DNA of 64,000 bases from Bugula neritina. Its lineage: Eukaryota; Animalia; Bryozoa. This document shows positions 9,694 to 42,600 of this stretch, piece after piece. The stretch lies in assembly GCA_964035545.1 (NCBI GenBank), contig OZ037769.1, forward strand, positions 15,158,633 to 15,222,632. The letters run 5' to 3'. Position 1 is the stretch's first letter, and the number at the start of each line of letters is the position of its first letter. The translations under genes were made by a program, and so were the position numbers. A model generated the notes under the pieces. It did not search any database. It had not been told where the DNA came from and saw nothing but the letters and a program-made list of their open reading frames with translations.

Positions 9694-12600
9694 GTAAGTC
9701 TGTATACCAGTTGCCATAAAAACCAGTCACAGCCACAATATTTTAACTATATGTTTGTAGTATATTAGTTTGTATTTGTAGTATGCAGTATTGTACCGCA
9801 TTTCCTTTAAGTTTTACAGTGAACACCTGCATGCAGATTTGTGCTGAGTCCATGTTTGATTGTATCACTTTACTTTTTTTATGTGACTCCTAGACTTTAA
9901 CCTATTTAAAAGTCTAAGATTACTTGGGTGATTTGCTAAAATTGTATTATTATTTTGTATAAAAAATGTAAAAAATATTTTTTCAGTGTTTATGGACTTT
10001 TTTGCAAAAACCAATGAAGAAATTGTTCATTGCTGTGTGTTAGCTTGTATCTCATTTGAATAGCTCAGATTTAGTTGATGTCCATTTTCGTTGCAGCTTT
10101 TATCTATTATTAAGGTAGATTAGGTCAACGCATAAATATAGCAATCAAATTCCCTTTCATCAATAGGGGTAAGGGGGGGGGGCACAACGGTCATGTAGGG
10201 GTACAAAAAGCCGGCCAAATTGTGAGAGAACTTTTTGACTTAGAGTTGTGATTTTTTTTCATAAAAAGGTATTGACATAAATATTCAGCCACTGTAGTTT
10301 CAACACTTGCGGAACATACGTGTTGAAAAGGCTAGTGAAAAACTGTTTTTACCTACTTTTTGTAAATTTTTTAAGATGCCGTTAAGGCTTTATAACTTTT
10401 TACACTCAAAGGCAACAAGCCTAGATTTTACTGATATTGTTGCCATTGCTTGTCTCTACATTGCTTAACTAGTATAACAGCAAACTCTAAAATAAATTTT
10501 CCATGAGGCACATTTTTGTTCAATTTGGCCATCTGGGGCACAATGGGCCACTCTGACCGGGCACAATGGGCCACCTGATTATTGTACTCTGATCACTGTT
10601 CTTGGTTTGTTTGCCCAAAATGTTGGTTGAAATGTTACTAAAATCTATAGATATAGCCATTTCTGACCTTTTTGTAAAATTGCAAAAAGACATCATGGTA
10701 AGACTACAAAACTACAAGGTGGAGCTCCCCTAATATATACATCTGGTGAGGTTAAAGCTATGCTATTTTATACATAATACATAACACTCTGCTGTTGCTA
10801 CTAGCAGATAGTCATAATATTTATTATACATTATATCATTGAGGAAATATACATGCATTTGACTAAAATAAATTGTGATTTGCTTATTTGCTCCCCCCCC
10901 CCTCTCCCTTCCGTACTCCAGCCACAAACCGAAGCCATGCACTTTAACTACAGTTCATAGAAAAAAGTCCACTCAAAATTTTGTAGCACATGTTACCAAA
11001 GTTTTTTTTCTGATAAAAGTTTTTTTAAAGTGTAAATAAAAAACATTTTTAGTTCTAAACAGTAATGATAATGGCACCGTAGAACCAAGTGATGTGCGTT
11101 TGATTTTGCTTTTCTCTGCTATCCGTAGTGGCACAAACTGTACAGTTAAAACATTAATTTTGCTTTAAATCTGAAAGAATATGTTTATTTATTTGTAATA
11201 TTGAATAAATAAAAATCAGATGCAACAAAATCTGCAAAGTTACAATATATTTGTTGTGTTCGACCCAGTGGCCCATTGTACCCCGGTACCAGGGCACAAT
11301 GGGCCGATTTTTTCCTCATGAAAATTTCATTATATTCTGAAAGTTGTGAGAAAGATAGAAACAACAAACTGATACCTGTAATAGACAACAGATGCAGCAT
11401 TAAGACTACAGATTATTGAACTAGTAACTTGAAAAACAGACGAATGAGAGCAAAAAATGCAAAATTCGGCCCGTTGTGCCCGTTACCCCTATATCAAAAT
11501 ATATAAATTGCTTGTATCAATATATCCATGTTTTAATATTATATGTATATTTATTTATCAATTGTCCAAAGTTTTTAAGTACAGCAGTGGAGAAATTGAG
11601 AAGTATAGCCTAGGTTCTTTATTTTTTATGACAATTTAGGGCAAAATTTAAATTTCTTGTGAGAACAAATAGTTTCGTTTGATGCATTTCCATGCAATTT
11701 AAAACACAGGCTTTTCTCAATTTCTCCATCACTGCATTATATACTTCACATGATTACTGCAGATTAAATAGCCATTCAGTATTGAAGTATAATACTTATA
11801 TGCTGTGAGCTGAATATCTAGCAGCTATAACCAGGTTATTATAATTATTTCAGGGCATAATTTCACAGTATCTCGTCCTCAGACATAACACTTATGTACC
11901 AATACGAGATACATTACATCATAATTAAATGTTGTCTATCGGCAAAAATTTTGCAGTAGCCAATCATAGTACTATAACAGGGCAGTCTGAGTGTAGTATC
12001 TCGTTTATCCGCATAATTATAATAGCCCGTAGTTGAAGATGGAGTTGGAAGCTTTTCAAATACCTCCCGCATATAATAGCATTTATGCTAGTCCTTAAAA
12101 CTAAATAAACATTATGGTAGACCAATAATCATGAAAGCTCTACTCATTTGTAACTGGAGGATTTGCAGCACCACAATACTAAATTTCTTGCATTGGAGGT
12201 GCTTAGGCTGTGTTGTCATAGTTATATGTACTTATTGGGGCTTGGTATAAAATTAAACCTGACAATTATAACGATTAAAGTATTATTGCTGTGGTTTCAA
12301 CTGACCAACTTTGGAGTTATTATCTCGATTCTTTGTCAGGAATGGTTAGATAATTTCATGCAATAATGAGTTTTGGCTTTATATCATTATAAATAATGAG
12401 TTTTGGCTTTATATCATTATAAATATCTACATTGATGGCAGCACTGAGCTAGAATTCTAATATCTTTTCAAGCTCATTGGGTGGCAGCTTATCGGCTAAA
12501 TTTTATGCAGATATTGAATAATGTGGTTTGATAGTTATGCTATATTGTTAGGTTCACAAGCATCTTTAAAAAGTTATAATTATTGCGTTGACCATAGGTC

Positions 12601-39600: not shown

Positions 39601-42600
39601 ACTCTAGATGCTGCTGGTGCTGGAATTATTGATTACGATAAGGAAAGAGAAGGCGAAGATGATTTGTTGGATCTGTACAATAAGAAACAACAGAGTGATG
39701 AGATGGGATATGTATTCACAAAACTTCAGGATCAAGGTGGAGTCAATCAAAGGAAAGGACAATGTTGGAGCTGATTATCTAAGCCGAATTGACTCAGGAT
39801 TTTAAGTAGTTAGGAGAAATGATCAAGATAATTTCTCTTAGAATGGGGGGTTGTCACAAATTCTGAGTGTACATATACCTATAAACTTACAGGGTTTTTC
39901 CTAATGATTATACAGGAATGTTCATAAATATTCTAGACTAATCAAAGAGATGGGTCATTGTTCATTATTACTGTTTTCGTTAGTCATGTTAACTACTGCC
40001 CAGCAATGTAAACAAGGTATTGCGCAATAATTGCGAAATAACCATGGAAATTCCAATGTTTTGTTTTGTTTTGATTTTCTATAAATAGTATTGGCATGTG
40101 GGGAATGTTTTCTACTAGAATCTTCTGTACTGGAATGCTTGAGAATATTCTAGAGCTTTTTGTTTACTATAAATACTGAGGCAGTTGTGTTTACAGTTCA
40201 GTTCATTCTTGGAGTTCATTTTAATACATTCATCTGTGCATATCTTACTAGAGAAATAAAGTATACTTATATCCACAACTCTATTTATTCACAACTGGAT
40301 TAGCAAGCTGTATACTACTTGTCTATACACTTCTGACTACCAGACTTTTCGAACTCGTCACACTGCTACCAACAGTTTTGTGACACTTGCTTGGTACTTT
40401 AATAAGTTTATTGGCATAGTGTATTATGTTATACTTATATATTTTTAAGACTTTAAGGAAAATGATGTTTTAGCTGCGTTATTCCTAATGCAAGCCTTAT
40501 AAATTTACAATATATACTAAAATATTATATTTGTAATTAGAAAGAAAACAAATTACTTTCATAAACTTATAATTATTGCATTCTGTTATTGTTAATGCTA
40601 GAATAACAAATTGAACACAGCATATGCTTCCCTAACCAGATGCTTTTAAACGGATTAAAAATAATTTGTCAATTTCTAATTATGAGGAACAAACTCCGCG
40701 GTAGTTTCTACATTTGCGCATGATTTTATCAAGATAGGCTTGCTTTTGTGTCAACCTGTAGCCAGTGCAACTATACTTTATGTAACGAGTAAAACAGACT
40801 CATTTCAAAGTACACAGTCTAAAGGGTAGGAATTACTACAAAGAAAAGTGCCGGTTAAAAGTTAATTATAATTGGAAATAAGGTGAAATATCAGTCAGAA
40901 ATTAAAAAGTGTCAACTAAAAAGGTGTATTGTTATTTCTTTTTGGCTTAATGAAAATGTATTTTGAGGAAGAAGTACGAGAAACATCTAGGAGGGGTTCA
41001 TATCCACCACTGGCGACTACCTGTTTATTGATGAAGAACTATCCAATGATAGTACAGTATTATGGTCTTTTGCCTTATAATTGGCTTTGATTTTTTTATG
41101 TCTAATTACGAGATACTAAACAGATGCAAAGTATGTTGTGCATAGGCAGTTTTTTTATGTCTCTAAACAACATTCTAGGAAAATATATACTGAATTATTT
41201 AGTAAGCAGCCAGCTGGTCTATTATAACCACGAGGTCATGGGTTCGAACCAGACAAAGGCCATTGATGATGTTAGAAAGAGCATCCAGTCATAAATGCCC
41301 CTGTGCCTCATTTAAATAAGTCTTTAGCCTGATTTAACAAAAACCCCATTCTATAATTAGGGATTTTTCACAGGGATATATCACAGGTATATAAGACACT
41401 TTCGTGAATATATAACCCGTTCAGTATTTAATTTTGTATGCAGAAGTATATAAGAAAAAATGAATTATAACTCATGTATATAGTTAAATATATACTTTCT
41501 TGCTGTTTTAGAAACATTTCCGAAAAGCATCAGAAGTTTTATTGACAGCCACAGATAATCAGGTGTATTTCTCTAGCATCACTATTCTGATACCGAACAC
41601 CTGGAAACTGAACAGCTCATGGGAAGTGGTAAGAATTCTATAACCGATCATATACTATATACACTAATATAAAATCTGGCATATAGAGGTTTATAGCAAC
41701 GATCCTTGTGAGAACTTGTGATGGAGAGGGTTTATAAAACATGGCTATATAAGAACTCTTTCGTAATTTGGCACAGAGAAAATTATGACTTCATGTCTTT
41801 TCTGACATTAATGCTGGTATTTATTGTACAATAAACTTGTGTTTACAATGCCTATACACTTCAACTACCACAGCTGCTCTCTAGTTATACACATTGATAT
41901 ATACACTTCTTTATGTACATGCCAGTTTTAACTACAATACAAATTAAACCGCACTTGCTACTTCTGTTACTCTTGTGAGCATACTTTCTCTGTTTCAGAA
42001 GTGTGTAGATATTTTTGATGTTGTATGTATCTATTATAGCCGCAGTTACATGAGTAAGAATTTCATAGTTTAGTAGTTATGTTTATAATAAGTTTCTTTG
42101 CAACAAGCAGTGCTAGCTTTCAGAACTATTTTAGTAGTCTGAGAGTCTAGACAAAATGAAGTTTTATGATACTGTGAATTAAACCATGTAAACAAAGCAA
42201 TGGAACAGAACTAACTGTATTGATTGTAATAACATATGGGTGGTGAAGCTTCAATTAAACTTATACTAATTAGAAAAGCAACTATTAGATTCAATTAAAA
42301 TAATAACATATTTTGGCAATTAATGTGTTTTAATGTTGGATGTCAGTTCAGTGTCATTGCATTGTAAAGAAATTAACTTTATCATCATGTAAATCATTAG
42401 TTTAGAAACTTTTACATTACTGTGCATAACAAATATAGAACATTTATTAGGTTGGTGCATTGTCTTTCTACTTGTCAAACAATTTCTCAGCTATTTCTAA
42501 AATAAATGTTTCCTGAGAGAATATTATCCCATAAATTGTTCTGTTCTTGTTCCCAGGCTACGAAAGAAATGTTCAGCACAGCCCGAGTTTTGATAGGCCC

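Follow-up and report, generated by a model that had tools for sequence, protein, structure and literature searches.

The window analysed here is a 64,000-nucleotide stretch of the Bugula neritina genome (assembly GCA_964035545.1, contig OZ037769.1, positions 15,158,633 to 15,222,632 of the forward strand) that contains a chloride-channel-regulator (CLCA) gene with a giant first intron. We find that window positions 11851-41192, inside this intron, very probably arose by insertion of a giant non-autonomous class II transposon, a cut-and-paste element bounded by terminal inverted repeats (TIRs), whose 20.4-kb family is young and present in many copies. The family comprises approximately 80 dispersed copies across nine contigs with common sharp ends, and these near-identical, mostly full-length copies amount to roughly 1.6 Mb, or 0.7% of the 216-Mb genome. 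It is an unusually large non-coding variant of a known element type and not a new kind of mobile DNA. The window copy is referred to as copy B, and coordinates without a contig label are those of the window. The features that define copy B and its ends are as follows.

11843-11850 (no strand): left copy of the target-site duplication, 8 bp, AATTATTT, from sequence reading
11851-41192 (plus strand): giant element, copy B, 29,342 bp in all and 20,471 bp once two nested long terminal repeat (LTR) elements and their duplications are subtracted, from sequence reading and alignment to a clean copy
11851-11888 (plus strand): left terminal 38 nt, starting CAGGG, with GTATCTCGT-N4-AGACATAA at element positions 18-38
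11904-11912 (plus strand): inverted copy of the 9-mer ACGAGATAC
11978-12003 (plus strand): internal pseudo-terminus, CAGGGCA...GTATCTCG, 127 nt inside the true left end, from a genome pattern scan
41096-41116 (minus strand): right-end composite motif GTATCTCGT-N4-AGACATAA, 77-97 nt from the tip
41155-41192 (plus strand): right terminal 38 nt, matching the left end imperfectly as an inverted repeat (25/38), with AGACATAA 31-38 nt from the tip
41193-41200 (no strand): right copy of the target-site duplication, 8 bp, AATTATTT

Copy B starts with CAG at 11851, ends with CTG at 41192, and has the perfect 8-bp duplication on both sides. When the terminal 38-mers are compared in inverted orientation without gaps, 25 of the 38 positions are identical; random 38-mers of the region match at a mean of 10.5 positions (standard deviation 2.9), and none of 20,000 reached 25. 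Counted from the tips, the composite motif GTATCTCGT-N4-AGACATAA occupies nt 18-38 at the left end and nt 77-97 at the right end, and a single AGACATAA is found 31-38 nt from either tip. The 9-mer ACGAGATAC occurs six times in the 64-kb window, where 0.18 occurrences are expected from shuffled sequence. Four of these sites belong to copy B (11868, 11904, 11996 and 41108) and two (8771 and 8899) to copy A, a neighboring inverted copy; each is at most 155 nt from an element end. The same holds in a clean 20,446-bp copy from elsewhere in the genome, in which the four ACGAGATAC sites are at positions 18, 54, 146 and 20362, all within 155 nt of the ends. The internal pseudo-terminus corresponds to element positions 128-153, and almost all family copies have it, as far as the listed places show. 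An initial annotation of this DNA had described the duplication flanking CAG and CTG, the 25/38 inverted match, the clustering of motifs at both ends, the retention of the left-end context around the 41108 motif, and a second copy stopping at the same terminal base (8924), and each of these readings was reproduced.

Comparisons of the window with itself and with the clean copy on another chromosome (C7:14860517-14880962) revealed that copy B is a 20.47-kb element broken twice. The clean copy aligns to it end to end, with breaks only at two LTR elements, and the unit of about 20.5 kb proposed for the element without them thus corresponds to 20,471 bp in the window and 20,446 bp in the clean copy. 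The internal features are as follows.

20382-24881 (plus strand): nested Ty3/gypsy-type LTR element with 232-bp LTRs that are 100% identical and a 5-bp duplication, ACAAT
26750-29300 (minus strand): decayed remnant resembling a reverse transcriptase (RT) of the long interspersed nuclear element (LINE) type, with broken frames, YVDD and KYLG-type peptides recognized by eye, and no Pfam match
36025-40385 (plus strand): second nested LTR element with LTRs of ~534 bp that are 99.8% identical and a 5-bp duplication, CTTGC

The first LTR element carries a single intact open reading frame (ORF) of 1316 aa with RT, RNase H and integrase, and the second a 1039-aa ORF with integrase, a weak, sub-threshold SCAN-like match and no RT match. 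Since each of them interrupts copy B and has its own 5-bp duplication, both inserted after copy B did. The RT-like remnant lies on the minus strand at element positions of approximately 10.4-13.0 kb and, being present in all four aligned copies, apparently belongs to the mobile unit. A length of 17.5 kb, which had been calculated by also subtracting this LINE, therefore has no meaning for the living family.

The initial annotation had predicted that the ends would be multi-copy and pair at 15-30 kb with distinct 8-bp duplications, and they did so, at ~20.4 kb. Either 200-bp end matches at least 40 places in the genome at 99-100% identity. A genome search with exact patterns recovered 79 left ends and 84 right ends, and a reversed-pattern control recovered none. 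Pairing each left end to the nearest right end on the same strand gave 76 pairings: 31 are 20.0-20.75 kb long, seven fall below this range, and 38 are longer than 21 kb; a few of the longest are false pairs, in which a right end is used a second time. Pairings longer than 21 kb are expected, because nested insertions lengthen copies, as in the 29.3-kb window copy. Both flanks were read for 13 copies: 11 have perfect, mutually different 8-bp duplications (for example GATTTTAT, TCCAATTT, GATTCCTC and AAATATTG), one matches at seven of eight positions, and one has none. The chance of a single 8-bp match is ~4e-5. The duplicated sites are 78% A+T and, across 12 sites, lean weakly towards A in the second and T in the seventh position (8/12 each).

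In alignments of four copies, which extend over up to 20.4 kb, substitutions separate the copies by 0.8-1.6% and are distributed evenly along the length. The three copies at the window locus are 0.8-0.9% apart from one another and 1.4-1.6% from the chromosome-7 copy. One copy begins with TAGGG instead of CAGGG, and nine left ends have a common single C-to-T change at element position 27, which indicates at least two source lineages. Public sequencing runs were examined as assembled contigs; in a run of another study, unique flank and element are both present at ~6% divergence, from which it follows that a sibling lineage also has the family and that the copies in each lineage postdate the split. 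The earlier view that this is a recently mobile, undescribed family is upheld.

We propose that a DDE-type transposase encoded elsewhere would recognize the CAG...CTG tips and the subterminal GTATCTCGT-N4-AGACATAA sites, as known DDE transposons suggest, excise the whole 20 kb, and insert it at an AT-rich target by cuts staggered by 8 bp, the repair of which would leave the 8-bp duplication. The element itself is essentially non-coding, with an old RT-like remnant travelling along, and the two LTR retroelements struck copy B after it had landed in CLCA intron 1. In having TIRs and a duplication, many near-identical copies, and no transposase that could be found, the family resembles the miniature transposable elements with inverted repeats known as MITEs, except that it measures 20.4 kb against less than 1 kb.

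The longest open stretch in the clean copy is 165 codons, and the longest stretches are of low complexity. The ten longest ORFs of the element gave no significant Pfam match, and the most protein-like of them gave no match in a language-model atlas search. A six-frame genome search for the hAT C-terminal dimerisation (PF05699), KDZ (PF18758) and P-element (PF12017) domains returned no match inside the 76 paired intervals; intact genes of these types were found elsewhere in the genome, all outside the copy intervals, the long ones included. Comparisons of the element with four hAT loci and two KDZ loci by tblastx and blastn were blank, as were Rfam and tRNA scans of one clean copy and two metagenome scans with the 22-mers of the ends, in a collection from which records of this genome may be missing. 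The reading covered five copies, completely or for the most part, and the 38 longer pairings (21-52 kb) were counted by their ends. The initial annotation had called the element non-autonomous and mobilized in trans; the copies read do lack a recognizable transposase, and it is this lack, in the copies read, that points to mobilization in trans.

Two RNA-like public runs show block-like cover within the left arm of the element, and one spliced contig places two exons there.

14575-14671 (minus strand): 97-nt exon in an RNA-like public run, with an AG acceptor upstream and a GT donor downstream
13084-13236 (minus strand): next exon of the same spliced contig, after a 1,338-nt intron (13237-14574) that is GT..AG on the minus strand

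All three frames across the junction (14575-14671/13236-13084) contain stops. Neither the element nor any family copy read contains the 15 nt that precede the 97-nt exon in the contig. They lie exactly at the end of an exon in a navigator-like AAA-ATPase gene on C6 and recur in a fragment of a navigator-like gene within a 35.5-kb copy, C1:33585073-33620608, whose left end is diverged. Because these upstream 15 nt fall at a navigator-like exon end, we read the spliced contig as a chimeric or exonised transcript and not as the message of an element-encoded protein. Inside the 35.5-kb copy, C1:33589454-33592468 contains the navigator-like AAA-ATPase fragment, whose closer relative is on C6, together with an RT-like piece of the LINE type. 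This fragment may represent gene DNA that was captured and is expressed.

The superfamilies that come mainly into question with an 8-bp duplication are hAT, P and Zisupton/KDZ, and each of the hAT, KDZ and P-like types has young, intact members in this genome. An intact hAT element (C1:30459875-30462921) is 3,047 bp long and has an 8-bp duplication, the TIR CAGGGTTGGGGT, ~30 subterminal TGTAATT repeats and an open frame of 563 codons. The hAT domain and the 563-codon frame recur with identical scores at two further places. The KDZ element (within C5:10970001-11000000) has the terminus CAGTTAGGTGCAG, followed by kilobases of a 98-bp tandem repeat, and inverted arrays flank its transposase gene; intact KDZ genes are present in several near-identical copies. 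The P-like family (e.g. C5:1104194-1108813) comprises seven identical copies and one diverged copy of an intron-rich THAP transposase gene and has the 5' tip CAATGAACTC. Its upstream 200 nt contain trinucleotide-type simple repeats and a tandem duplication of ~98 bp.

We lean to hAT because of the CAGGG/TAGGG tip, and KDZ is a serious rival because the KDZ tip also begins with CAG. A hAT-type assignment is accordingly the leading candidate without being a probable one, a KDZ/Zisupton-type assignment is possible, membership in some other group is rather unlikely, and a P-type assignment is more unlikely still. The element had first been credited with the hallmarks of hAT and P elements; the 8-bp duplication, the CA...TG ends and the subterminal motifs are indeed present, and membership in either superfamily was not borne out. 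The 8-bp duplications and CAG...CTG ends also separate the family from Helitrons, which make no duplication, have TC...CTRR ends and insert in AT. A genome search with the pattern YAGGG-N(6-20)-GTATCTCG, aimed at relatives with other interiors, found, among the first 100 of 186 places, family copies, an unrelated repeat and scattered single matches.

Several observations weigh against the interpretation of copy B as a non-autonomous element moved in trans, and against a hAT-type mover in particular. No autonomous partner was found among the hAT, KDZ and P-like loci read, which covered part of the hAT loci and one KDZ group, and the tips read there share at most their first 3-5 nt with the giant element. 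The tips and motifs of the giant element were likewise absent from the hAT, KDZ, P-like and gene loci that were fetched. The TIR tips of hAT elements follow YARNG, and their typical, though not obligatory, target consensus is nTnnnnAn. The left tip conforms to YARNG with CAGGG (in one copy TAGGG); the right tip, CAGTA, breaks it at the fifth base, and the duplications at 12 sites lean to nAnnnnTn and not to the hAT consensus. The spliced RNA contig shows that there is some transcription unit in the left arm. Lastly, a master copy with a transposase could be among the 38 longer pairings.

The most serious rival is that the family consists of non-autonomous elements of KDZ/Zisupton type, moved by an intact KDZ transposase of this genome. 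Zisupton makes 8-bp duplications, which are documented for hAT as well (PMC12730594), near-identical intact KDZ genes are at hand, and the KDZ terminus starts with CAG(T), like the right end of the giant element. The resemblance stops there, however, as the termini differ beyond CAG(T) and the 98-bp subterminal arrays are absent from the giant family; no copy contains a PF18758 match, and tblastx against the KDZ loci was blank. We regard this origin as a live possibility, albeit an improbable one.

It is rather doubtful that the family is autonomous, with a master among the larger size classes or an intron-rich or unrecognizable transposase encoded in the 20.4-kb core. Such a master would fit the fact that half of the pairings exceed 21 kb and that some lengths recur across loci (22,511/22,515; 25,120/25,124; 32,360/32,376), and the canonical GT..AG intron and exon-like cover in the left arm point towards autonomy as well. 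Yet none of the hAT, KDZ and P Pfam matches falls within a copy interval, long or short, every reading frame of the spliced exons is broken by stops, and the upstream exon of the contig matches a host-gene-like exon end and not the element core. No block of the element is conserved more than the rest, divergence being flat throughout, and the extra length in the three long copies read (A, B and Z, the last being a further neighbor) consists of nested insertions.

A non-autonomous element of the P superfamily is improbable. P elements make 8-bp duplications and have asymmetric spacing of the transposase sites at their ends, and the composite motif is similarly asymmetric here, with distances of 18 nt and 77 nt to the two tips; the genome also contains eight near-identical copies of a P-like transposase. 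These copies are all outside the element copies, however, and at the 5' end, which was the end compared, the terminus CAATGAACTC and the first 90 nt are unlike the giant element. Finally, a simple inverted or segmental duplication whose 8-bp match arose by chance, to which copies A and B as an inverted pair 2.9 kb apart might seem to point, is refuted by ~80 dispersed copies on nine contigs with common sharp ends and different perfect duplications.

The non-autonomous transposon that we favor can be compared with several known systems. It is like non-autonomous hAT elements (maize Ds, hAT MITEs and, as a large case, the 14-kb fungal ToxhAT, PMC12506042) in its 8-bp duplication, short imperfect inverted CAGGG/TAGGG ends, few subterminal motif copies, lack of its own transposase and clustered copies. 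Such elements are typically below 1-5 kb, whereas the giant element has 20.4 kb of mostly non-coding DNA, present at full length in dozens of copies; it also differs in its right tip, CAGTA, and no hAT partner with matching ends was found. With Zisupton/KDZ elements (PMC12730594) it shares the 8-bp duplication and CAG-type tips, but it contains no KDZ relic or 98-bp subterminal arrays, and the termini diverge after 3-4 nt. Polintons/Mavericks are likewise animal DNA elements of 15-20 kb with inverted ends, but they have a 6-bp duplication, long TIRs and a gene set of pPolB, integrase and capsid, as opposed to 8 bp and a 38-nt imperfect TIR here. The ten longest ORFs of the giant element had no Pfam match to Polinton genes, in a search that was not aimed at pPolB. 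Large non-autonomous CACTA elements are also large TIR elements that are moved in trans and carry foreign DNA; they occur in plants, have other tips and make 3-bp duplications, as opposed to the 8 bp of this animal element. The same likeness and the same differences apply to the Pack-MULEs of plants (PMC6431247), with duplications of 9-11 bp. The passenger DNA of the giant element is a dead retroelement plus unassigned sequence, and not host gene fragments.

Two further family members lie at the left of the window.

1-8924 (minus strand): copy A, inverted with respect to copy B, ending exactly at 8924 and extending left of the window
8925-9286 (plus strand): fragment D, an older relative of element positions ~85-444, 88-90% identical, abutting the terminus of copy A

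Copy A had been expected to continue to the equivalent of 41192 and to have CTATATCG at its far end. Instead, it reaches element position 15022 only, contains a 5.3-kb insertion, and passes, with no base between, into the left terminus of a full copy, Z, at C5:15147301/15147302, 11.3 kb left of the window. Copy Z (C5:15119032-15147301) measures 28.3 kb including two insertions and has no duplication of its own and no CTATATCG at its far end. The insertions in copies A and Z are unlike element sequence, and one is an LTR element. The failed prediction reflects a terminus-precise rearrangement and does not weaken the transposon reading. In Ac/Ds and P elements, adjacent deletions made by the transposase, or alternative transposition, are known to place breakpoints exactly at transposon tips, and the junction of copies A and Z looks like such an adjacent deletion.

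Four family members (D, A, B and Z) are thus contained within 81 kb. Other copies are also strongly clustered, at C3:14.78-15.84 Mb, C1:32.9-35.3 Mb, C6:0.4-6.5 Mb, C7:11.1-15.0 Mb and C8:1.0-8.5 Mb; ~1 Mb of C3 has 13 of the 79 left ends, and the 33.6-Mb C2 has one. Such clustering could reflect local hopping or a preference for repeat-rich regions, and the four members at the window locus, together with the bunched copies, fit either explanation. Two copies 2.6 Mb apart, C7:12251519-12271962 (minus strand) and C7:14860517-14880962 (plus strand), have an identical 20-nt right flank, and the first is without a duplication; this common flank could stem from an inter-copy duplication or rearrangement or from an assembly artefact. 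A second older relative, restricted like fragment D to element positions ~85-444, is located at C7:12184636-12184994, and the two are 88-92% identical to the element. Fragment D lies ~220 bp upstream of the CLCA start codon.

The CLCA exons that flank copy B were delimited from matches to CLCA families of Pfam, the point (~9690) at which an RNA contig departs from the genome, and an acceptor at 41511.

9508-9693 (plus strand): CLCA exon 1, encoding the signal peptide and the start of the CLCA N-terminal domain
41512-41630 (plus strand): CLCA exon 2, with an approximate 3' limit, 319 bp downstream of the right end of the element

Intron 1 is 31,818 bp long. The element and its duplication make up 92% of it, and 2,468 bp remain without them, close to the ~2.5 kb first estimated. 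A very high-copy repeat fills 10164-11489 of this intron; these 1,326 bp, neither more nor less, are missing from contigs of one run of the same species, so the insertion looks polymorphic. Approximately 165 kb upstream, C5:15003055-15003451 is an 87% match to the CLCA exon 1 region without fragment D; it is probably a CLCA paralogue and could act as a paralogous empty site. Later CLCA introns contain long TA-rich (TATATA-type) arrays at 45043-46450 and 50472-50796, which are 90-98% identical to each other.

For annotation, the giant-element family accounts for giant introns such as CLCA intron 1, and the terminus-precise rearrangements between neighboring copies suggest that the family also reshapes local genome structure. 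Cut-and-paste transposons are usually less efficient when longer, and non-autonomous derivatives are usually short. A 20.4-kb element at ~80 near-identical, mostly full-length copies therefore implies that the responsible transposase handles very large substrates faithfully. Naming a transposase that moves 20 to >30 kb would bear on the cargo limits of DDE enzymes and could provide a tool for large-cargo gene transfer. More speculatively, a transposase, either of an unrecognized kind or a hAT or KDZ enzyme that tolerates exceptionally large cargo, might routinely move 20-50 kb in the animal germ line, although we consider this unlikely; the cargo-accumulating family that the initial annotation had envisaged is at present hinted at only. 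If such a transposase is at work, nested insertions would join the transposing unit, the element would grow by accretion, and the enzyme would be a natural large-cargo vector.

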